Shown: positions 48,001 through 64,000, counted from the stretch's first letter. The stretch is 64,000 bases of DNA from Tubulanus polymorphus (GCF_964204645.1 NC_134034.1:11606962-11670961), one strand, 5' to 3'. Notes: generated by a model from the sequence alone, not told the origin. A program made the numbers and translations.

Positions 48001-51000
48001 GATTTACCCCTAGGGGTAACTTTGATACTCAGTCTTTAGAACTGGGCCCAGGTTTAGTATCTACCCCAAAGGGTAACTTCGATACCGCACTCGGCTTGTG
48101 AAACTGGGCTCAGGTTAAGAATTTATCCCAAAGAAACCAGGGTACCTGGTCTATAAAACTGGGTCCAGGTTGAGAATTTACCCCTAGGGTTAACTTGGAT
48201 ACCCAGGCCTGGTTTGTTAACAATATCTGCCTTAAGGGTGATAAGAGTTTACAGGGGCAGCCATTGTTAGCGAGGTGTGCTATGAAATTAGGTGCCTATC
48301 GTAGAGTTTAAGGACTTCAGGACAATGAGCTGAATCTCATTGCTAGAGAGTAAAATCATCTTCATGAATTTGTAAATGTGATTGTTTGGTTTGGATTTGT
48401 ATAGAAGACCGAGGGCGACGAAGACGACGAAAAACTACGCGCGCAAATCTCCGAGGCTCGTAAAATCATCGAAGACCTGGAGACGAGTAAAGTGATGGCG
48501 ATCGCCGAGACTAAACAAGAGATGCATTTAGCGTTGGAGTCGAAGGACGACGAATTGAAACAGATGCAAGAGACATGTTCGAATTTAAAACAGCAGCTCG
48601 CCGAACTGAAAGAGTCGAACGATAAACTTCAACAACTCAGTGAGTTATTGAACATACTCTAAACTACTAAAAGTGTAAAACTCAGTGAGTTATATTAGAT
48701 ACACTCTTAACTACAATGTACTAAAACTGTTAAACTCAGTGAGTTATATTAGATACACTCTTAACTACAATGTACAAAAACTGTTAAACTCAGTGAGTTA
48801 TATTAGAAACACTATTAGCTACAATGTACTAAAACTGTTAAACTCAGTGAGTTATATTAGATACACTTTTAACTACAATGCACTAAAACTGTTAAACTCA
48901 GTGAGTTATATTAGATACACTCTTAACTACAATGTACAAAAACTGTTAAACTCAGTGAGTTATATTAGAAACACTATTAGCTACAATGTACTAAAACTGT
49001 TAAACTCAGTGAGTTATATTAGATACACTTTTAACTACAATGCACTAAAACTGTTAAACTCAGTGAGTTATATTAGATACACTTTTAACTACAATGCACT
49101 AAAACTGTTAAACTCAGTGAGTTATATTAGATACACTCTTAACTACAATGTACAAAAACTGTTAAACTCAGTGAGTTATATTAGAAACACTATTAGCTAC
49201 AATGTACTAAAACTGTTAAACTCAGTGAGTTATATTAGATACACTTTTAACTACAATGCACTAAAACTAAAGCTTTGTGAGTTAAACTACAGTGCTAACA
49301 TTGCAACATTTCAGGGAGTTTTTGAACATTATAAACTTCTAAAAAAGAATTGTCATCTTAGCTAGGATATTCAGACTCATTTTGGTTCAGTTCAACAGTT
49401 GAGACTTTCTTGTGTTGTAGGTAAAGAACAGCTGGAAAAATCTCGCGAAATCATAAGAAAATTACAGGAAGAGAAGAAAGCGCTGGCGCAAGAGACCGAC
49501 GAGAAAATCGCGCTTGCGGAAAAGAGTTTAGAGGAAGAACGGTCGAATCTCGTGCAAGAATTACATCGCGGGAAACAGGCGACTGTTTCATTGTTACAGG
49601 TTAGTACGGTTACATGTGCATGTACAGTAACATGTGCATGTATGTTTACATGTGCATGTACATTAACATGTGCATGTACGGTTACATTACCTCGAGAATT
49701 TACATCGCGTATCATCGACGTTTCATTCTCTGTATAATTACGCGCAGAAAGAAAATGAAGATAAGTTAGAACAAGCGATTCAAGAACAGGAAAAAATCTG
49801 GCAAGAAAAGTTCGCGCTGAAGGTACGTAACAGATGATATTTCGAAAACAAATATTCTATCATGAAGAACAGTCCCTGAAAATACTGGACTTCAGATGAT
49901 TTTATATTAAATATTTGAGTTTTTGGCGCAGTTTGACGAAGAGTAAAAATTAGTTCTTTTCCGATATTTGAAATTTGATTCAGATTTGAACCGAGAACCG
50001 TTTATTATTAAAACGCGTTTAAATGTTGATCGTATTATTTCTAGGAGCGAGAATACGAGCACAAACTGCAGTTGAAACTCACAGAGAAAGAGGACGACAT
50101 GAAACTCGCCATCGAAGAACGAGATCTACAAAAGATGGCAGCACTGAGTCAACAAGATTCGGCCAAAGACGAACTTCAAACCGAATTACAGTCGATGAAA
50201 TCTGTAAGCCGGGAATTTTATCGTTGAAATTCATTCTATTTCGTTGAATTATTTCTCAGTGATTTCGACTTCGGTATTTTTATTTGTTTAGAAAACTGTT
50301 GAATTGGAAAACGTTATTGAGAAACTGAAGGCTGATCATAAAACGCAGTTAGATTCGTTCCTCGCTCAAATGGAGTCAAATACACTCAGACATAAAGAGA
50401 CTTTAGCTGAAATTAAAGTGAAATTTGATACAAAGGTAAAATGGCATTCGCTTGATTACTTCTTAGTGGGTCTTACCATTCTTGATATCTCAGGGATTTT
50501 GTGTGGGTCTTATCCTCCTTGATATCTGATTGATACTTAGAGGGTCTTACCCTCCTTGATATTTGATTGGTTCTTAGGTCTTACCGTCCTTGATATTTGA
50601 TTGGTTCTTAAGTGTTACCCTTCTTGATATTTGATTGGTTCTGAGGTCTTACCGTCCTTGTTTTGATTGGTTCTTAGGTCTTACCCTCCTTGATATTTGA
50701 TTGATTCTTAAGAGGGTCTTACCCTCCTTGATATCTGATTGATACTTGAGAGGGTCTTACCCTCCTTGATATCTGATTGATTCTTAGGGTCTTACCCCTC
50801 TTAATAACTGATTAATTCTTCGGGATTTATTCCCCTTGATTACTGATCACTTGTGTGGGACTTTTTGTGGGTCATTTTACACATTGTCTTCAATTCTTAG
50901 TTGAAACAAACATTCATCTGATTAGTTATAGCACTTTTAGAGGTAGTTCAGAATTTTGCTAACGAATCTGTTTGATTATGCCTCCGTTTCAGGTGAAAGA

Positions 51001-54000
51001 AATACGCGAGAAATGTTCGCAAGATTACGAAACGAAAATCGACCAACTGCGCCAGGATTATCAGACGCGCACGGAGGAGCTGGAGCGACGTCACGAGCAG
51101 ACGTTGAATTCGTCGAACTCCGACTTCGAGGTGTCGCGTAAACAACAGATCGAACGACTCGAAGCGAAACATCACTCGGTGCTCGAGGAAAAACAACTTC
51201 AAATCGAACTCTACGCGAACGAGATCGCCGATTTAAAATCGAAAAATGTCGATCTGACGAACTGCGGCGACGAGCTAACCGCTCGAATTGTTGAATTAGA
51301 AACGAGTTTGAATTCGGAGCGCGAAACGTCGGAGAAACTGATCAAAGACGTGGAGAATCTACAAATACAGTTCGAGGTCGACCGGTCGAAACTGGTTGAC
51401 GAGTCGACGAGTTTCGCCGCTCGGTGCGACGAGTTGAACGTGAAAATAACGCTGTTGACCGACGCGAATTTCGGCATGAACGAAAAATGCGACGATTTGG
51501 AAAATCGTTTGAAAGAGAAGGACGCAGAAGTCGGTAAAACGGAGCAGCAGGTCGCGGCGCTGGAGCAGCAGGTCGCGGCGCTGGAGCAGCAGCTCGCGGT
51601 GCTGGAGGAGAAACTAACCGCGATCACGGAAGAGAAAAACGTCGTCGACGGTTACCTACGCGAGAAAGAGCAGACGATCGGTGAATTGACCGCCGAGAAA
51701 TCGGATCTGACGATGAACGTCGAAGCGAAACGGAAGGAAATCGACCTCGTCGTCGAGCAATACGAGGAACGAATAAAATTCGCAGCGGAGAATCACGAGC
51801 GAGAGATCGCGAGACGAGTCGAGGTCGCCGAGTTACAGCAGCGCAGCTCGGTGACGGAGATATCGAGCGAGTTAGGCGAACGTCTCGAGCGCGCGAATAA
51901 AACGATCACCGAGTTGGAGAACGTCGTGCAAGAGTTGAAATTAACCGAGAGCGAACTTCGAAGTCGGTTGGACGTCGAAAAAACGGACTTCGACGCGAAG
52001 TTAACGACGATCGCGGAAACGAAAACGATCTGCGAAAATCGCGTCGTCGAATTAGAACGGAAGTTGAGCGAACTGTGCGAGAGACTGGCGGCGGAAAAGA
52101 CGGACGCGGACTGCAGTCTGGCGGAGGCGCAGGCGGCCGGGCAGGCGTTACGCGACGAGCACGCCGCCGAGAAAGATCGACTGAATAACGAAATTAACGA
52201 TCTGCGAAATAAACTGGAGGCGAAAATAACCGACGCCGGAACGCTCGAAGGTAAGATAATTCACTTGCAGGAAGTTTGTGATCAATTGCAGAGAGAAAAC
52301 GAAGACAGTCGAACGCGCGAACGCGAATCAGAAAATAAATACGACGAAATGAAACGAACGTCCGATGAACACGTGGAGAACTTGACGACCGAATTAAACG
52401 CGTTGAGAGACGAACGTGGAAATAACGAACTTCTCGAACAGAGGAAATCGGAATTAGAATCCGCAATCGATTCTCTGCGCGACGATCGCGAGAGTTACGT
52501 GAAACGTTTGGACGAAGCGTTAGTTTCGATGACGCCGGATGTCATCGGGGAAGAAGCTGGCGATCCGACCGTGAAATTAGAACGGATTCTAGAAGCGTTC
52601 GTCGCGTCGAGAACGGAGCGCGATAAACTGACCGCGGATCTCGCGGAACGCGACGCCGAGGCCGTCGAATTAAAACGGCTAAACGACGAATTGAAAACTG
52701 ATTCGCAAAATCGGATTCGCGAATTCGAAGAGAGTCGCGTGGAATCGAGCGAAATTACGCAAAATCTTGAGGCGAAGTTAAACGAGTCGAACGGTAAAAT
52801 TTCCGACTACGAAAAACAGTGCGAAACGTATCGGACGACTTGCGAAAATCTCGAGAAGAAATTATCGGAAGAACATTCGCTGCATAACGAGGTGTTGACC
52901 GAGCTGAAGGAATCGCATTCGAGAATGTACGCGGACAAACAGGAGGAGTTTACGCGCGAGAAGGGTGAAATCGTTCAGAGTTACCGAGCGGAGGTCGAAC
53001 AATTGAAACAACAAGTCGCCGCGGAGAAGGAGAACCTGGCGCGGTTCCAGGACTCGGTGAAGACGAAATTCGAAGAGCGCGAACAGAAGTTCAAGGAAAG
53101 TTTGTCGAAACTGAGGGAGAAACTGCAGCAGAAGTTGAAACAGAAGGAAGAGGAGTACAAGAAGAAGGCAGACGCGCTGGTCAGCGAAGGGCAGGAGAAC
53201 GTGACGAGAAACCTGCTCACCTCGCATCAGCACGAGCTAGATAGTGTGCGAAATACACACCAGGCGGAGCTGAAAGAAAAGGAGCTAGAAATCGAGAAGT
53301 TGACGAGTGCTCACAAAGAAGAGTTGAACGCGTTGGAGAAAGAGAATGCGGAGAAGATCGAGGAATTCGAGGAGAGATCGCGCAAAATGAACGAAGATTT
53401 CGTCGTGAAACAAGCCACGTTTGAGGAAAAGCTGATGAACTCCGAAGCTCAGAGTGATCAATATAAAACGTCTGTGATACAACTAGAAACGGCAGTCGCT
53501 GAACGAGATGCTAAGATATTAGGACTGCAGCAGAAAGCGCTGACACAAACTCAGGATCAAAACAATCAAATGGAATCTATGCAAGAGGACTTTCAGACAA
53601 AGGTTAAAGAGAAACAGGATGAAATTAAAGACTTGCAGGAGAAGCTGGCCGAAGTTATTGAAAGTCAGGAAAGAGTCGAAGCTGAAAAGGCGACGCTTTT
53701 GGAGAAAACTACCGCCCAACACGCAGGGGAGTTGGAATCGGCGGCGGCAGAATTGGAATCGAAAACGAAACAGATCGAACTGTTAACGGAGGAGCTCGAT
53801 TCGTTGAAGCAACTGCTCGAATTGAAAGAGGAAGAGATCGCTCAAAACGACTTCAATTTCAAGGAGCAAAAAGAAGTGATCGAGAAATTCGAAAGCGTCC
53901 TCGTGCAGAAGAATTCGCTCATCGAAAAGTATTGCGACGAGATTCGCGAAAAAGATGGCGTCATACTTCGGAAAGAGGAGGAGTCGAACGAGGAGTCAGT

Positions 54001-57000
54001 CGGAAAGGATGACAAAATAAAGGGATTGAAAGAAATGGTGGCGGCGTTTGAGACGAAAGTTCAGGAAACGGAATCTGCCTTACGAGAGTCTGAGGAAAAA
54101 TCTATTGGAAAGGATGATGAAATAAAGGAATTGAAAGAAAAAGTAGAGACAGAGATTCAGGCTAAAGAAGGTGCCATACAAGAGTTTAATGAGAAATCTA
54201 TTGGAAAGGATGATGAAATAAAGGAATTGAAAGAAAGGATGGCGACGTTTGAGATTGAAATTCAGGAAAAAGATGCCGCCTTGCAAGATTCTGACCAGAA
54301 ATTTGTCGGAAAAGATGCCGAAATAAATGAACTAAATGAAAAAATTGCCGTATTTAAAACTTTGGAGAGTGAAATGGAGAAGTTAAAATCGGAATTAGGG
54401 GAGGCAGAAAAGTTGAATTTAGAAAAGAAGGATTTGATACAAATGCTTGAAAACGATAATTCGGAGACGCGAACAAAATTGAAAGCGGTCGAAGAAGAAT
54501 TGGAGGAAAAGAAGGAGGTGTGCGACGAGAAGATATCGTTGATTACGAGTTTAGAGGAGAACGATCTGGAATTGCAAACAAAACTGAAAGAATTGACGGA
54601 TAAATTGGAATCGACCGAGCAGAAATTACAGGAGTGCATCGCGTCGTACGAGCAGACGATCGATCAACATAAACAACAAGCAGACGCGTTGAAACATGTC
54701 CTCGCCGGGCAGAAAGACGAACTCGAACTGCTACGCAAACAGACGTCGGATATGGAGAACCAGTCGAAGATGAATCATGCCGATTTGGAGAACGCGTTAC
54801 AAACGAAAGTTCGCGAGAGCGAGCAGGAGCTGTTGAACGCGGCAGAAAAACATCGCGACGAGTTAACTCGAGTTAAAAACGAAACGAAAGAGAAAATCGG
54901 TCAAATGAAACAGAAATATTCGACGAAATTAAAAGAGATTCAGTCGGTGAATAGCGAACACGTCGGTGAGTTGGAAAGTAAGATCGAAGCTCTGCAGAGT
55001 GGCGTCGAAGTTTTAGACGCCGAGAAATGCGAAGCGATCGCTGACAACGATAATCTACGCGTTAAAATCGACGAATTGGAAACTCGTTGCGGCGACAAAG
55101 ACGCGGAAATATCATCGCTGAAAACGCTAGTGGCAGACGCGAATTCGGCGCTGGATTCGACTAAAACCGACAACGAAAAATACGAAAGTGAACTCGGCGA
55201 AAAGAATTCGTTATTAGAATCCTATTCTAGTCAAATCGACGAGTTGAAAAAGACTCACGACGAACTGAGCGCTAAAAACGACGAATTGCGGAAAGTTATT
55301 TCGGAACTGGAAAGTTCTAGCGTGGACAGCGCGAAACTGGAAGAAACCGCTCGCGAGAAACACGTTCTAGACGAGAGAGTCGTCGAATTGTTAGCGAATA
55401 ATCGGGAATTGAACGAGAAATTGTCGGAATTACGAAACGAGAAAGAGCGTCTGCAGAACGATTCGGTCGGACGCGACGGGGAAATGCAAACGCTGCTGTC
55501 GGAGTTAGAATCGGAAAAACGTCGTTTGGAGGCGAAGCTCGACGCGGAGAAATCCGAACGCGAGACGTCGACCGCGGAGCACGAGAAACTGATCGTCGAA
55601 ATGAAAGCCGATTATAAAGAAAAAATGCAGAAACTCGTCGACGAGGGTAACAAAAAACTGACGGAGCTGAAGAAAAAAGCCGAGCTGAAATTGACGCAGA
55701 TTAAACGCACAATGCAAGGAAACCGCGACGACGTCATCACCGAGATGACCGAACAGATCGCGAGACTTCAAGATCAAATATCCACGTTCGAAGAAACGGT
55801 CGATCGACTGACCGCTGAGAAGAACGACCTGAACGCGGAATTCGAGTCGACGAAATCGGAGAATTCGAAGTATCGCGACGAAATCTCCGAGAAATTGGCG
55901 ATTAAAGAGGCCGAGTTGACCGAGGCGACCGCGGCGACCGATTCCAAACTCGGCAAGTTTAAAAAACTGATTCAGAGTTTGAAAGCGGAACAAGAAGAGC
56001 AGACGCGGATGGTCGCCAGGTTGGAGAAGGAACTCGCGGAATCGGAAACGCAACGCAAGACGCTCGGCGAACAATTCGAGTTGGCGAAACACGATTTCGA
56101 CGTCGACATGCGAACGTTGAAACTCGAACACGAGAACGAAGTCGACGCGATGCGACGCAATTACGAGGATCGCATCGAAGACTCGGAAACGATGACGAAC
56201 TCGCGATTGAAACAACTCGTTAAAGAGTTCAATCTGAAAATGGCCGAGAAAGAGAAAGAGTTTCAATCGGTTTTCGGTCAGGCTTACGGTGAGTGCGTGC
56301 GTAGCGATCCCGGGGCAGGTTCCATAGTCATGGCTTAGACTTAGACCAGTGTCTAAGACCAATTTCTATAGATAATCTAACAATTTAAGATTTAAAACCA
56401 CTTTTAATCTCAACTATGGAACCAGCCTCTAGTAGTACTATCAATAACCCTCTAGTCATAGAGGTCTTGCAGCTCTGTGCCATATTGGTTGGCAAAAACA
56501 ACTGATTTACTACATGACAGACCCTTAAACTCTGTAAACCCCCTGATTGTGTTCTGTTTTTATGTTCATCAAACTATGAAGTCACATGCAAGACCTCTAT
56601 CGACCTTTCTAGAAAATATGGCTGACTCCACGAATCCTCCAATGACATCATCAACTTGCCTTTTACTGATACAAGAAGGGATTATATTATGATGTGGGGC
56701 ATCCTATTTTCTGGAAGGGTCTCTTAACAAATATTTCATGTATTCTGTTAACCACTCCTCTGATAGACCACAACAGTAGCTTTTACTTAGATCTACAGTG
56801 AACCCTTATTGTTGCAGTCAAGGCTTAGAGTTTCTAGATTGAACCTATTCTGGTTTAAGAATATCAATTCTAGATAACAAACTCTCTACCGGTCGCTTCT
56901 ATCAGGTTTACTGATTACAAACTCTCTACCGGCCGCTTCTATCAGATTTACAGATTATACTATTCTGGATTAGTTAGAGATCGTATTCTGGTCGAACATA

Positions 57001-59683: not shown

Positions 59684-62600
59684 TATTGTATGGTTATTAT
59701 GTTATTTATTTGTAGCCGATTGATAATTCGACCGACTGCTCCCCCGCTGCAGTAGCTTACGTACAGGTATTAATATCATCGATGTTTCATCTCTCTCTAG
59801 TCTCTCTCTTACCCTCGTTTTTATTCACATTCCGTCCGGTTTGGTTGTGGTTCTTCTGAATTTTTCTATAATCGTTACCCCCGGTGATCAATTTGGAGAC
59901 CGGGATTTCGTCTATATTTTTTTCCGTCGTTCGATCTTTCGTTTACCGGATCAAAAACCAGCGGCGTAAGGTATCAGGAAATTCAACGGTTTTGGGTTGA
60001 AATATTGACACCAGGGGGCAGTTTTTGAAAAGTTTAAGGCTAATGATGATTGAAAAAAAAAACTTCAGTGTGTTGAATTACGGGAATACCACTTTAGTGT
60101 GTCTACACCGCGGTGCGGTGTACCGTTAGTTACTAATATTACACTATGCTTGACAGGTGCTGCCATCATTTATTAGGGATAAAAACTAATAGCATCAATA
60201 CAACACAATGCGGTGTACTAGCAAAATCCTTCACCGCTTAATACACCGCACTGAAAGGGTTAAGAGAGTGTTGTCATGTACATAGAGAAGTGATGAAATT
60301 TTTTGAGTGAATGCTCTTCAACGGCCCCCAAACCAGACCTTAACCCGACACACTTTTACGATACTTTCACCATCAAGAACATGAAAACATTTTAATGAAT
60401 GTTACTCGTAATGAATATTTGTGACGATGGCGTATCTTATTCCATGCAGCTCCGCACAGCCTTGACCTGTATTCGTCACATCAGACATTCAATGGATCAT
60501 TTCATTCCTGTAGTTCATGATTCTATGTTGATCTTGCAACGAGGCACGGATAATTAATACTGGTACTGTCAATCAATGCATGCTAGCCCCACCCCACAAC
60601 CCTCTCTCTCTATCCATCCTCTACGGTCATTTCCCGGTTAATCGACTGTCCTCTCTAAATGTTATTCGAATCAAAATTTCTTTCTTCGAGAAATTAAGGA
60701 CATTTTTGAATTCATCTAAAAATGTTAAGCAGATGAGGGTTTTTCGACGTATCGATTCAATAGAATATTGTGTGATGCGTGTTTTACAGGAACTCGTACG
60801 TCAGAATCAGTTGGCGTTAACGGCGTTCAGTAGCAGTTCAACGGGCAGTGAATTACTGAGGCAACAGATTATACACCTTACTAAACAGCTAGACGAATGG
60901 AAATCAAAATACAAGTAAGCAATATACATTATCAGTGTTTTCCGACCACGCCTTTCATTCATTTTACATCCATCAATGTCAATATTCTATCAATGCTGAT
61001 AACTGCTTTGAAATATATTGAGCTAATGTGAATAAAAGAAGATTACCCCAAAAATGTTCTGTATTTTTTGGGGGAATTGAAAGCCTCGCTATTTCAGCAG
61101 CTGCGATGTTGTACACTTAACAATGCATGCAGCCCTTTAAGAAATTTGTAAAACAAAACTATTTCATCAGTCCATTCGTGTTAGCTTAATAACCAAATAC
61201 AAGTAAGCAATATACATTATTAGTGTGGACAGGTTTAAGAGGGGCGGCTCCATCCATTTCTTTTTTACATCCACCCTTCTGAAAATCAGCCACCCCTTAT
61301 AAGATATTTGCTACCGCCACCGGAGTGGATGTCAATATTCTACGAATTCTGATAACTGCTTTGAAATATATTGAGCGAAAAATGTGAAAAATACGAGATT
61401 ACTCCGAAATTAAGCTTCGATTTTCTGTATTTTTTGGGGAATTGAAAGCCTCGCGACTTCATCTGTAAACTGCGATACAATCTTTCATCATAAGTTCGTC
61501 GGTCTGTGACGTTTAGCTTTAAAAAAGTAATGGCTGACCGGACGAAGCTCGGCGGAAATGAGAAACAAGATTTCTATTTTTTTAGAGCCTTACGCGAAGT
61601 TTTCAAAGTCTTATCGTCTATAATTTATTATTTACTATATTAAATTTTTTGTTGAAAATCGATGACTCTGCCCGTAAATATAATGTATATGTATTATAGC
61701 GATGATTATAAGTAAAATAAAATCTAAATCTAAAATCTAATGATGTAATTGATTTTGAATTCAGATTGGATATCGCTGAACTGTCGGGCAATAAAGAGAT
61801 GGTACTGAACAAACTGGACGCGCCGTTGCTACAGTTACGACCGACGGTGAACGATGACGGCGAAGAATTAAACGAAACTCAACAATTAGAATTGTACAAC
61901 ATGAATCTACAGGCTCACATTTCGCAGCAGAACGCCGAAATAGCTCAATTGAAGATTAAAGATCGAGACTTCGTTCAAAGGGTAACGATCCCCATCGATA
62001 TCTAGATGAGGAGAGAATCGCACAATGATAATGAAAAGTCCGAAAATGAAACTTCGAGATAGTAGTTTATTTCAACGTTTCGACTATATTTTAATAGTCA
62101 TCGTCAAGAATAAATCATTATTCCTGAAGATGACTATTAGAATATAGTCGAAACGTTGAATAAACTACACTAGTTTAAGGAATACAGTATTCCTGAAGAT
62201 GACTATTAGGATATAGTCGAAACGTTGAATAAACTACACTAGTTCAAGGAATACAGTATTCCTGAAGATGACTATTAGGATATAGTCGAAACGTTGAATA
62301 AACTACACTAGCTCAAGGAATACAGTATTCCTGAAGATGACTATTAGGATATTGTCGAAACGTTGAATAAACTACACTAGCTCAAGGAATACAGTATTCC
62401 TGAAGATGACTATTAGGATATAGTCGAAACGTTGAATAAACTACACTAGTTCAAGGAATACAGTATTCCTGAAGATGACTATTAGGATATAGTCGAAACG
62501 TTGAATAAACTACACTAGCTCAAGGAATACAGTATTCCTGAAGATGACTATTAGGATATAGTCGAAACGTTGAAATAAACTACTATCTCGAAGTTTCATT

Positions 62601-64000
62601 TTCGGACTTTTCATCATCATTGTGCGATTCTCTCCTCATCGCGTCAACACGGATATAGTGTTCTACCAATCGTGATCGATATCTAGACCCTACGACCCCT
62701 TTCAGGATGGCCACTGACCTGGAACACTCAGGGAATCGGAAAAATCGAGAAAAAAATCTGGGGGAAAATTTTACCAAAAAAACTGAAGAACTAAGGGAAT
62801 TTGGATAATGCTATTTCACTCAGGGAATTTGGGTAATCGCATGGAAAAATTAGGCAAAACATGGGAGATTTGACAAATTTTTACCAAAAACCTGGAAAAC
62901 TCAGGAAATTTAGATAATGCTATCGACCACGTGTTTGTTAATCAGTGCGTGATTCAATTAAAGATGAATGAATCGTAACGTTTTGAGCCTAGAAATTTCG
63001 TCGAATCTCTGGAGGGGAATTTTGTGATTCACATGGTTAAATCAGTAATAATTCAAGGGATTTGTAAATGGGCTGAAAGTGGTCACCCTGGCTTCGAATT
63101 GATATACATGTATGGTTATAATCGACTCCGTTTTCAGATGGAAATGATGCAAGCTCGGTTGAATTGTTACGAAAGAGGTGAAACGCCGCCACCTAGCCCG
63201 TGTAACATGAACCATTCTGGTATAAACAACTCATCGTCAGTCGGTGGCGGTCTGTTGTGTGAAGCCACTGAATATGAGGTATGTTTCGCCTAAAACTGAC
63301 CCAAATTAAGTGCTGGAGATAATTTGAAAATTTTGAAATATCCCACCCCAGTATGTTCAATAACGGATATACCGGGTACTGCTATAGTGCGTCTGCACCG
63401 CAGTATTATTTCATCAGTTCATATTCATCGCTTAAAAGGATTTGTTTTTGTCGTTATTTCAGTATTTAAAGAACATTCTTTATCAGTACATGCTCGGCAA
63501 AGAAACAAAAGTAAGTTGTGTATCTCAACTGGCCCCTTGTATCCTAGACCCAGTTCCGCAGTTGCAACATCAGAATTGAACTCATTCTGAACTGTTAACC
63601 CTTTCAGTGCTGGCTAATTAATACCCTATAGTGCTGAAGATAATTTGAAAATTCTGAAAAATTCCACCCTAGTGTTGAATAACGGGAATACCACTATAGT
63701 GCGTCTACACCACAGTGCGGTGTATCGTTAGTTACTAATATTTCACTATGTTTGACAGGTGCTGCCATCTTTCAAGAGAGATAATTAGTAATTACTAATT
63801 AAATCAATACACCGCAGTGCGGTGTACTAGCAAAATCCATCACTGATTCATACACCGCACTGCGGTGTAGACGCACTGAAAGGGTTTTAAAGAGTCGGAT
63901 TTAATCAATAGTTCATAGCTGAGTTTGTGTTTTCGTATTAAGTGACTGATTTGATTTGTATTACAGGTTTTAGCGCGAGTTCTATGCACAATAATGCGAT
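42055..64000 (+). CDS. GOLGA4: Golgin subfamily A member 4 (golgin-245), coiled-coil plus C-terminal GRIP domain; truncated by the window end
   Basis: Starts MFKKLRQKIE, the golgin-245/97 N-terminal motif. Exons: 42055-42138, 42613-42666, (43660-43677), 44729-44779, 45033-45210, 45674-45861, 46716-46919, 47435-47575, 47703-47831, 48405-48639, 49421-49599, 49748-49822, 50045-50203, 50292-50435, 50993-56288, 57177-57307, 58026-58244, (59716-59766), 60790-60914, 61765-61981, 63138-63278, 63463-63510, 63967-end. Conserved ALAMSQDKQFRRISELKEQTQLDQLAK segment; GRIP domain EATEYEYLKNILYQYMLGKETKVLARVLCTIMR. Confidence 0.9.
45888..46164. mobile_element. piggyBac-like MITE family G (TTAA-CCCTTTCAG termini)
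   Basis: TTAA followed by CCCTTTCAG. A full inverted copy is at 63599-63884 (TIR CCCTTTCAGTGC/GCACTGAAAGGG). Partial copies at ~60065-60259, ~33263-33306 and ~16300-16330 have TTAA at the retained end. Confidence 0.8.
48681..49270. repeat. 54-bp tandem repeat x~11 containing copies of the upstream splice donor
   Basis: Unit CTCAGTGAGTTATATTAGATACACTCTTAACTACAATGTACTAAAACTGTTAAA. Confidence 0.92.
50455..50840. repeat. ~35-39-bp tandem repeat (GGTCTTACCCTCCTTGATATTTGATTGGTTCTTA)
   Basis: About 10 degenerate copies. Confidence 0.85.
57708..57943. mobile_element. MITE with GCCCATCCCAAAATAAT..TCTGTTTGC.GTAAC TIRs
   Basis: ~40-bp inverted termini. Confidence 0.7.
58461..58598. mobile_element. 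MITE family A copy (inverted)
   Basis: Same orientation and near-identical to 9882-10019; flanks are CAG and CTG. Confidence 0.85.
62007..62674 (+). mobile_element. Penelope-like (PLE) derived palindromic insertion with tandem minimal hammerhead motifs
   Basis: Direct repeat ATCGATATCTAGA at 61994-62006 and 62675-62687 (TSD-like). Inverted arms of ~105 bp (62005-62112 versus ~62533-62640). The interior is 7 x 69-bp units. Confidence 0.75.
62119..62577 (+). ncRNA. Array of 7 minimal type I hammerhead ribozyme motifs (69-nt period)
   Basis: Each unit reads UAUUC-CUGAAGA-U-GACUAU(loop)AUAGUC-GAAAC-GUU-GAAUA. CUGAAGA starts at 62124, 62193, 62262, 62331, 62400, 62469 and 62538. Confidence 0.72.
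63599..63884. mobile_element. piggyBac-like MITE family G, full copy
   Basis: TTAA-CCCTTTCAGTGC...GCACTGAAAGGG. Confidence 0.8.

Follow-up and report, generated by a model that had tools for sequence, protein, structure and literature searches.

An intronic array of seven minimal hammerhead motifs in Tubulanus polymorphus is probably a noncoding derivative of a Penelope-like element

RESULTS

Architecture of the intronic insert

We analyzed a 64,000-nt stretch of Tubulanus polymorphus DNA (GCF_964204645.1, NC_134034.1:11606962-11670961), referred to here as the window, in which an insert with a tandem array of seven hammerhead ribozyme motifs lies in an intron of a plus-strand gene. The insert occupies positions 62007-62674 of the window (668 bp in total), is noncoding, and has no open reading frame (ORF). 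We put at about 80% the probability that it is a 5'-truncated, noncoding copy from a Penelope-like element (PLE) family in which the 3' part of the pseudo-long terminal repeat (pLTR) was multiplied as an array, that it was inserted by a PLE enzyme supplied in trans, and that it is likely an inert passenger of the intron.

The array of 69-bp units was recovered by Tandem Repeats Finder (TRF) as a single call (62119-62583, period of 69, 6.7 copies, 97% matches). Read directly from the sequence, the seven sense copies of the motif run, in order, UAUUC, CUGAAGA, a single U, GACUAU, a 6-nt loop, AUAGUC, GAAAC, GUU, and GAAUA. Two copies depart from this pattern: unit 4 has a mismatch in stem II (AUUGUC), and the 3' strand of stem I in unit 7 reads GAAAUA. 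A 25-nt linker follows six of the seven hammerheads; the seventh instead enters a different, 100-nt sequence that ends at 62674. Six complete units, each a 44-nt minimal hammerhead plus the linker, thus occupy 62119-62532 on the plus strand, with cleavage predicted after 62157 and then every 69 nt (62226, 62295, 62364, 62433, and 62502). The seventh hammerhead (62533-62577, plus strand), for which the last cleavage is predicted after 62571, leads into the PLE tail. The proximal part of the tail (62578-62640, plus strand) extends to the short alternative 3' end and pairs with 62007-62069 of the left arm. A further 34 nt (62641-62674, plus strand) end at the long alternative 3' end of the PLE and are present in the right arm only, which is longer than the left arm by that amount.

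To the left of the array, 62007-62112 is an inverted arm on the minus strand, an antisense PLE terminal repeat that starts at the short 3' end (tail position ~66) and reaches back across one hammerhead. It matches positions 313 to 421 of a 455-nt reference (3' untranslated region plus pLTR, cut from the PLE copy L044 described below) at 93% identity. The antisense hammerhead within it (62071-62112) has the core UUGACGA (C3U) and is inactive. Between arm and array lies a head-to-head junction, AATCAT (62113-62118), whose TCAT corresponds to the 4 nt preceding the hammerhead in the parent pLTR. A repeat search aligned the two arms over 108 nt at 95% complementarity (62005-62112 versus 62533-62640) and also found that the insert is flanked by a perfect 13-bp direct repeat, ATCGATATCTAGA, with the left copy of this target-site duplication at 61994-62006 and the right copy at 62675-62687. 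A preliminary description of this DNA, made from the sequence alone, had listed the seven sense units with these motif parts and the deviations in copies 4 and 7, the antisense copy with its UUGACGA core, and the 13-bp flanking repeat, and all of these are borne out here.

The motif has the hallmarks of PLE minimal hammerheads

Besides the core, PLE minimal hammerhead ribozymes are recognized by one base left unpaired between A9 and G10.1, by a G10.1-C11.1 pair, by a helix II that is long and a helix I that is short, and by a palindromic 15.2-16.2 that lacks loop 3 (PMC4209133). The conserved core (C3 to A9 and G12 to A14, together with A15.1, U16.1, and an H17 other than G) is present in all seven sense units of the window and is not preserved in the antisense copy. 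Every unit has an extra unpaired U between A9 and G10.1 as well as the G10.1-C11.1 pair, and so do the other main motif families of the genome, except that the extra base is an A in one PLE family. Helix I is 5 bp and helix II is 6 bp in the window units, in line with the 4 to 5 bp and 6 to 8 bp, respectively, that are typical of the class, and ACGU stands directly before U17, which makes 15.2-16.2 palindromic and leaves no loop 3. Genome-wide, the pattern CTGANGA-N10-30-GAAACGTT gave 2,958 matches, compared to 26 for a reversed control, far more than chance would give. Three PLE families have the core and GAAACGUU in common and differ in both stems. Among these three families only, 8 of the 11 stem pairs were changed on both sides, and 97.6% of cells were paired, versus 22 to 37% with slid partners; none of 500 shuffles reached the observed value. 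Further pairing-preserving versions of helix II were also seen (GACUAU/AUAGUC, GGCUGU/ACAGCC, GGCUAA/UUAGCC, and GAUCUC/GAGAUC). Because all of the hallmarks are present and the stems covary, the motif is, judged by its sequence, a genuine member of the PLE minimal hammerhead class, and the minimal hammerhead with a palindromic, loopless helix III that had been proposed at first holds up.

An Rfam search, which the preliminary description had named as a check, gave no match to a hammerhead model at E ≤ 10 over 61500-63200. This is the expected outcome, since the models require a helix III hairpin and the motif has none. Subthreshold Rfam matches to plant and animal microRNA precursor models (MIR7994, MIR837, and mir-788) at 62071-62160 were set aside as artifacts of hairpin shape; over that stretch the antisense hammerhead and unit 1 form a near-perfect 43-bp hairpin.

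A parent PLE is present in the genome

In the 268-Mb assembly, a genome search gave more than 500 matches to the element. A search for the GIY-YIG domain gave at least 150 scored matches, many of them in open frames of 817 to 841 amino acids and often arranged as tandem or head-to-head pairs. Such abundant PLEs with open frames suggest recent activity in this genome. Ten regions around GIY-YIG matches were examined for the unit and the tail. One of them holds a single 2.86-kb PLE copy (L044) between duplications of 15 to 16 bp; elements of the same type stand in tandem, every 2,856 to 2,863 bp, at two other loci (L043 and L050). The 800-amino-acid ORF of L044 carries an RVT_1 domain (5.8e-10), representing the reverse transcriptase (RT), and a GIY-YIG domain (1.5e-5), and the start codon follows directly after the tail. 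In both pLTRs of this element, the first 50 nt of the window unit are found without change and are followed by the 100-nt tail at 94% identity. This places the hammerhead and tail of the insert in the 3' part of a PLE pLTR. The insert, itself without an ORF, is therefore continuous in sequence with an RT and GIY-YIG element, and the earlier proposal of a PLE retroinsertion with an inverted partial terminal copy is supported by this parent, which shares its terminal repeat. Of the outcomes that the preliminary description had named as refuting, two, stems I and II that do not covary and the lack of a PLE with this terminal repeat, were thus not obtained. The genome holds at least three PLE families with open frames of 817 to 841 amino acids, each with a distinct hammerhead: CUGAUGA-U-GGCUAA..., CUGACGA-A-GAU..., and the window type (L038 to L040, L045, L046, L049, and L051).

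Array insertions share two 3' ends but differ in arms, duplications, and unit number

The 69-bp unit with an identical linker was found at 19 or more separate loci, with 6 to 40 copies at each. The 3' ends at 19 array loci, like those of the full-length PLEs, cluster at tail position ~60 to 66 or at 99 to 100, that is, 34 to 40 nt apart; in the window, the left antisense arm stops at the short site and the right sense arm stops at the long site. For the Anolis PLE, Frangieh et al. (2024; PMC11167929) reported that reverse transcription starts at two adjacent internal sites, that the optional 30- to 40-bp genomic "tail" is the stretch between these two start sites, and that the PLE protein nicks and extends both DNA strands. 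Two RT start sites together with nicking and extension of both strands, as in that model, would explain the unequal inverted arms. The signature of that tail, namely, an optional 30- to 40-bp extension, inverted partial copies, and duplications of variable length, is present in the Tubulanus family.

The junctions between arm and array differ from locus to locus, which indicates that the inverted arms arise anew with each insertion. Some array copies have no inverted arm or have upstream pLTR sequence in its place. Flanking direct repeats were compared at nine array loci, whose outer boundaries were approximate: five have repeats of 10 to 16 bp (that of the window is 13 bp; the other four measure 10, 10, 16, and 13 bp, the last with one mismatch), at one the only repeat is 9 bp and is offset from the ends, and at three no repeat is clear. 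The differing inner junctions and varying duplications point to independent insertions rather than to copies of a fixed fold-back element. We also considered a fold-back or MITE-type (miniature inverted-repeat transposable element) DNA transposon, with terminal inverted repeats and a minisatellite in which the hammerhead would be incidental. The 108-nt inverted arms and the flanking direct repeat do look MITE-like. However, the arms consist of a PLE 3' end and differ in length by 34 nt, the inner junctions vary, the flanking repeats range from none clear to 16 bp, and the arm is absent or replaced by upstream pLTR in some copies. A transposon with equal arms and a fixed duplication is contradicted by these observations, and we regard this explanation as extremely improbable.

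Every complete array ends in a single tail. The GAAAUA variant of the last unit occurs together with a tail of the L044 type in four insertions, namely, the window copy with its 7 hammerhead units and three others with 6, 11, and 12; in one of the four, 150 nt of upstream pLTR are present that are 99% identical to L044. Unit number must thus change between or after insertions. TRF gave no higher-order periods within the arrays; a lag analysis of unit-to-unit mismatches did, revealing a locus-specific periodicity in four of them: 5 units on contig C10 (3176755-3182013), 2 units on the same contig (12997568-13001315), 3 units on contig C60 (1-3046), and 7 units on contig C9 (1277678-1281420). 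These patterns indicate that blocks of units were duplicated within arrays, during or after insertion, and that local amplification at the DNA level would be one cause of changes in unit number.

Origin of the 69-bp unit

Positions 1 to 50 of the unit are identical to the pLTR, and the remaining 19 nt were not found in L044. At two loci (L003 and L005), the last unit of the array passes by way of the linker start (ACACTAGCTCAA...) straight into a variant tail (...GTAACATTTTCGGAC...), and loose contig ends show the same continuation from linker to tail. The linker start joined to tail sequence had 301 matches in the genome, many of them in arrays with a 167-bp period, and a control had none. 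Long arrays with this period were seen on contig C8 of the assembly (G000), for example at 196093-197188 and 372152-373846, with the linker start followed by the tail. The C8 arrays are probably the hammerhead-plus-whole-tail repeat that was ancestral to the 69-bp unit. Degenerate units of the 167-bp type (at L052 and L027) consist of a hammerhead, the whole tail, ~10 nt, and the next hammerhead. We infer from these copies that a 167-bp repeat of hammerhead and tail came first, as a PLE tandem unit of the retrozyme type without an ORF, and that a deletion of ~98 bp, which may be placed between short AACATT(T)CAG repeats, then gave the 69-bp unit. A derivation of the linker as a small inverted piece of the hammerhead 5' end had also been considered; it was dropped, as the L003 and L005 arrays show that the linker derives from the tail. 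Separately, we observed a composite locus (L052, G000:C2:31460000-31469999) in which a degraded minus-strand PLE stands head to head with a plus-strand array of 23 units of 69 bp, with degenerate 167-bp-type units between them. This locus may be close to the origin of the array lineage.

A different history would have a pLTR fragment with a single hammerhead inserted into the intron and the seven units arising in place by slippage or unequal exchange. DNA-level amplification does occur, as the four arrays with periods of 2, 3, 5, or 7 units attest, and unit numbers differ between closely related insertions. The linker and junction, however, are one and the same at all 19 loci, which implies that the unit arose once, was dispersed as arrays, and reached the window already in that form; likewise, the three other insertions with the GAAAUA last unit and the same tail type (6, 11, and 12 units) argue for a common source that already carried an array. 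Growth of the array in place is accordingly an unlikely origin for the window copy.

Predicted folding and the question of a 69-nt replicon

The preliminary description had proposed that adjacent units pair as dimeric hammerheads and release 69-nt monomers or circles. The first part of the proposal is geometrically possible. For a tandem dimer, a nested double hammerhead can be drawn without a pseudoknot: GAAUA of the first unit would pair with UAUUC of the second, leaving the linker as loop 1, helix III would form between the two ACGU tetrads, and an outer stem I would close the whole. Energetically, this fold is disfavored. The double-hammerhead fold was calculated at -11.2 kcal/mol and the best structure containing it at -15.8 kcal/mol, compared to a minimum free energy (MFE) of -27.1 kcal/mol. 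This low score arises because the deletion junction created AGGAAUA in the linker, which is predicted to pair with UAUUCCU in its own or the following unit. This local linker hairpin was assigned -5.8 kcal/mol, versus +1.5 kcal/mol for stem I closed by the linker. Folding placed the 5' strand of stem I and C3 and U4 of the core in pairing with the linker (p of ~1.0), and in a trimer, C2.1, C3, and U4 were paired to the linker with probabilities of 0.92 to 1.0. When the full insert was folded (MFE, -286 kcal/mol; z = -33), the arms formed a stem of ~100 bp in which unit 7 and the antisense copy were buried. In its 69-nt context, these models therefore predict that the linker masks most of the hammerhead and that the arm-arm stem does so at the ends of the insert.

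The 69-nt unit does not include tail positions ~28 to 100, which hold both insertion end points, so the corresponding RNA would probably not serve as a template for reinsertion by the PLE enzyme; the mobile form would instead be a linear array with one tail. The predicted cleavage site, where a cleaved template would be expected to give the 5' end GAAUAAAC, is the starting point of none of the 19 arrays.

These observations bear on whether the array is a working miniature retrozyme, in which adjacent units are cut after each GUU as double hammerheads and 69-nt monomers circularize and serve as rolling-circle templates for new tandem insertions. Such a replicon would be consistent with the double-hammerhead geometry of the tandem dimer and with a motif of a genuine PLE class whose members do cleave, if weakly, as dimers in vitro (PMC4209133). 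The array also fits an operational definition of an "active non-LTR retrozyme" (10.64898/2026.07.22.740005). A search for public runs gave none on record as RNA. Read evidence came from Logan contigs of four runs, and contigs cannot show RNA ends; contigs that hold arrays occur in run X2, possibly RNA. If this run is a transcriptome, as it may be, its contigs with arrays would imply transcription of arrays at some place in the genome. Set against this are the energy gap between the double-hammerhead fold and the MFE structure, with the core paired to the linker; the absence from the unit of the tail region with both end points; the start positions of the arrays; and the single tail at the end of every complete array, which fits linear templates of array plus tail. 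Published work points the same way: hammerheads of PLEs cleave poorly even as dimers (PMC4209133), insertion of the Anolis PLE in vitro did not require cleavage and the cleavage site was the end of no read (PMC11167929), and only one of nine retrozyme dimers was cleaved (10.64898/2026.07.22.740005). We consider the replicon unlikely, and the release of 69-nt monomers or circles, as proposed earlier, to be possible but unsupported.

Host gene and surroundings

The host gene lies on the plus strand and includes an open exon of 1,788 amino acids at 50972-56338. The exon next to the insert, part of a coiled-coil gene, extends over 61762-61981 on the plus strand, as placed by an ORF at 61766-62005, by a contig alignment, and by a GT donor at 61982-61983. 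The contig, 3,236 nt long and from run X2 (record 9), aligns to the window only at 61758-61981 and is unlike the window on both sides, so that it looks like a spliced transcript. Within the intron, the target site begins after 12 nt. The hammerheads have the same sense as the host gene, in agreement with the orientation given in the preliminary description, for which the plus-strand ORFs and the exon with its donor speak. The name GOLGA4, given there to the host gene, was not confirmed; Pfam and the protein Atlas returned generic coiled-coil matches only. Run X5, possibly RNA, had no contig on the searched stretch. The insert places a hairpin with a stem of ~100 bp 25 nt downstream of the host splice donor, and an effect on splicing or through small RNAs is conceivable.

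Two further observations concern the flanks. In a contig of run X1 that crosses the left junction, an additional 8 letters (CAGAGAGA) follow 61992, beside the target-site duplication, and there are four base differences in the exon and intron; the insertion is present in it. The disparity between X1 and the window at 61992 is an allelic difference adjoining the insertion. Just downstream of the insert, 62717-62900 holds a short dispersed repeat (ACTCAGGGAATTTGG... and AAATTTTTACCAAAAA, with copies 28 to 110 nt apart), for which the summed contig depth is high and parts of which are skipped by many contigs; it is unrelated to the hammerhead element.

DISCUSSION

We propose the following course of events for the insert and its relatives. 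What was retained from the pLTR would be the minimal hammerhead and the ~100-nt tail behind it, and in the source lineage the hammerhead with a short stretch of tail would already have been a tandem unit of 69 bp. An RNA comprising array plus tail would have been copied into the intron by target-primed reverse transcription, with the PLE enzyme acting in trans. Priming on both nicked strands, from two internal start sites 34 nt apart, would yield the array in sense orientation to the right and the short arm in antisense to the left, along with the duplication of 13 bp, as suggested by the published biochemistry of PLEs. Unit number would then shift between loci, in part through local duplication of blocks of units at the DNA level. 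The hammerhead could act only as a dimer and is here predicted to be largely masked, and the copy is most likely inert in its intron.

Several points weigh against this account. Mobilization in trans, priming on two strands, and the activity state of the ribozyme are all steps that we infer. The 167-to-69-bp deletion is read from partial, degenerate copies of the 167-bp type and from a spacing table, and among the loci examined there was no full-length PLE whose own pLTR holds an array. The predicted masking takes account of nearest-neighbor energies only and ignores proteins and cotranscriptional folding. The core is no better conserved than the linker (1.4 versus 1.8 events per position across 251 units in 19 arrays); variation of this kind would fit inert copies and cannot prove inertness.

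A more active role for the array can be imagined in two forms. Double hammerheads might cut the array in vivo, possibly aided by the PLE protein, so that 69-nt units build up as monomers or circles, far below the 170 to 400 nt of the retrozyme circles described to date, with the pairing between linker and stem I acting as a viroid-like switch between a cleaving and a ligation-safe state; or small-RNA silencing of the PLE family might draw on the ~100-bp arm stem of the host pre-mRNA. We hold either to be quite improbable. If the units did cleave and circularize, they would be the smallest ribozyme-bearing circular RNAs known; nothing in the present analysis points in that direction.

The kind of element itself is known. 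The present analysis contributes the recognition of the two-end tail signature, the series from 2.86 kb through 167 bp to 69 bp, evidence that arrays move as array plus tail, and the predicted masking by the linker. The series appears to document a stepwise reduction from a 2.86-kb PLE to a 167-bp repeat and then to a 69-bp repeat that still spreads by means of the 3' tail of its parent, and it supports the recent proposal that animal retrozymes are derivatives of PLE pLTRs. The paired 3' ends and inverted arms also lend genomic support, in an invertebrate, to the model of two start sites and two-strand priming, which so far had been described only in vitro for a lizard PLE.

The Tubulanus family resembles the Anolis PLE (PMC11167929) in its two 3' ends 30 to 40 nt apart, its inverted partial copies, its tandem or partial-tandem pLTRs, and its duplications of variable length. 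In contrast to the Anolis element, the window copy has no ORF, and the hammerhead and tail of the Tubulanus PLE precede its start codon, whereas in Anolis they overlap the ORF start; the window copy, moreover, is known from its DNA sequence alone. With the PLE minimal hammerheads (PMC4209133; Lunse et al. 2016/17, to the extent that they are described in PMC6765202), the window motifs share a type I topology, the CUGANGA...GAAA core, the lack of a loop 3, such that helix III can form only in a dimer, and a place in the pLTR of an element with RT and GIY-YIG domains. Those hammerheads stand ~3 kb apart in tandem PLEs or occur as scattered single copies, whereas the window motifs are 69 bp apart, and the linker attributed to the deletion is complementary to stem I and to C3 and U4 of the core.

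Animal non-LTR retrozymes, as described in 2020, have a canonical hammerhead with loop-loop contacts, units of 150 to 450 bp, and circular RNAs of 170 to 400 nt (PMC7229834). Li, Clavereau, and Pollet (2026; 10.64898/2026.07.22.740005) define retrozymes more broadly, as tandem repeats with complete canonical or minimal hammerheads, a consensus of 51 to 972 bp, and an origin from PLE pLTRs. The window array falls within the second, operational definition and outside the stricter first one, with its contacts between loop 1 and loop 2 and its 150- to 450-bp unit. Like non-LTR retrozymes in general, the array consists of noncoding tandem repeats with one type I hammerhead per unit, is derived from a PLE pLTR, and is dispersed with duplications of more than 4 bp. 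Unlike the classic retrozymes (PMC7229834), it has a minimal hammerhead in a 69-bp unit that lacks the tail region where insertions end, and it has been seen as DNA only. Newt satellite 2 and the Schistosoma Sm-alpha repeats are similar in being tandem or dispersed repeats whose hammerheads have a weak helix III and, in those systems, act as double hammerheads; their units, in contrast, measure several hundred base pairs, and the helix III hairpin in them is short but real.

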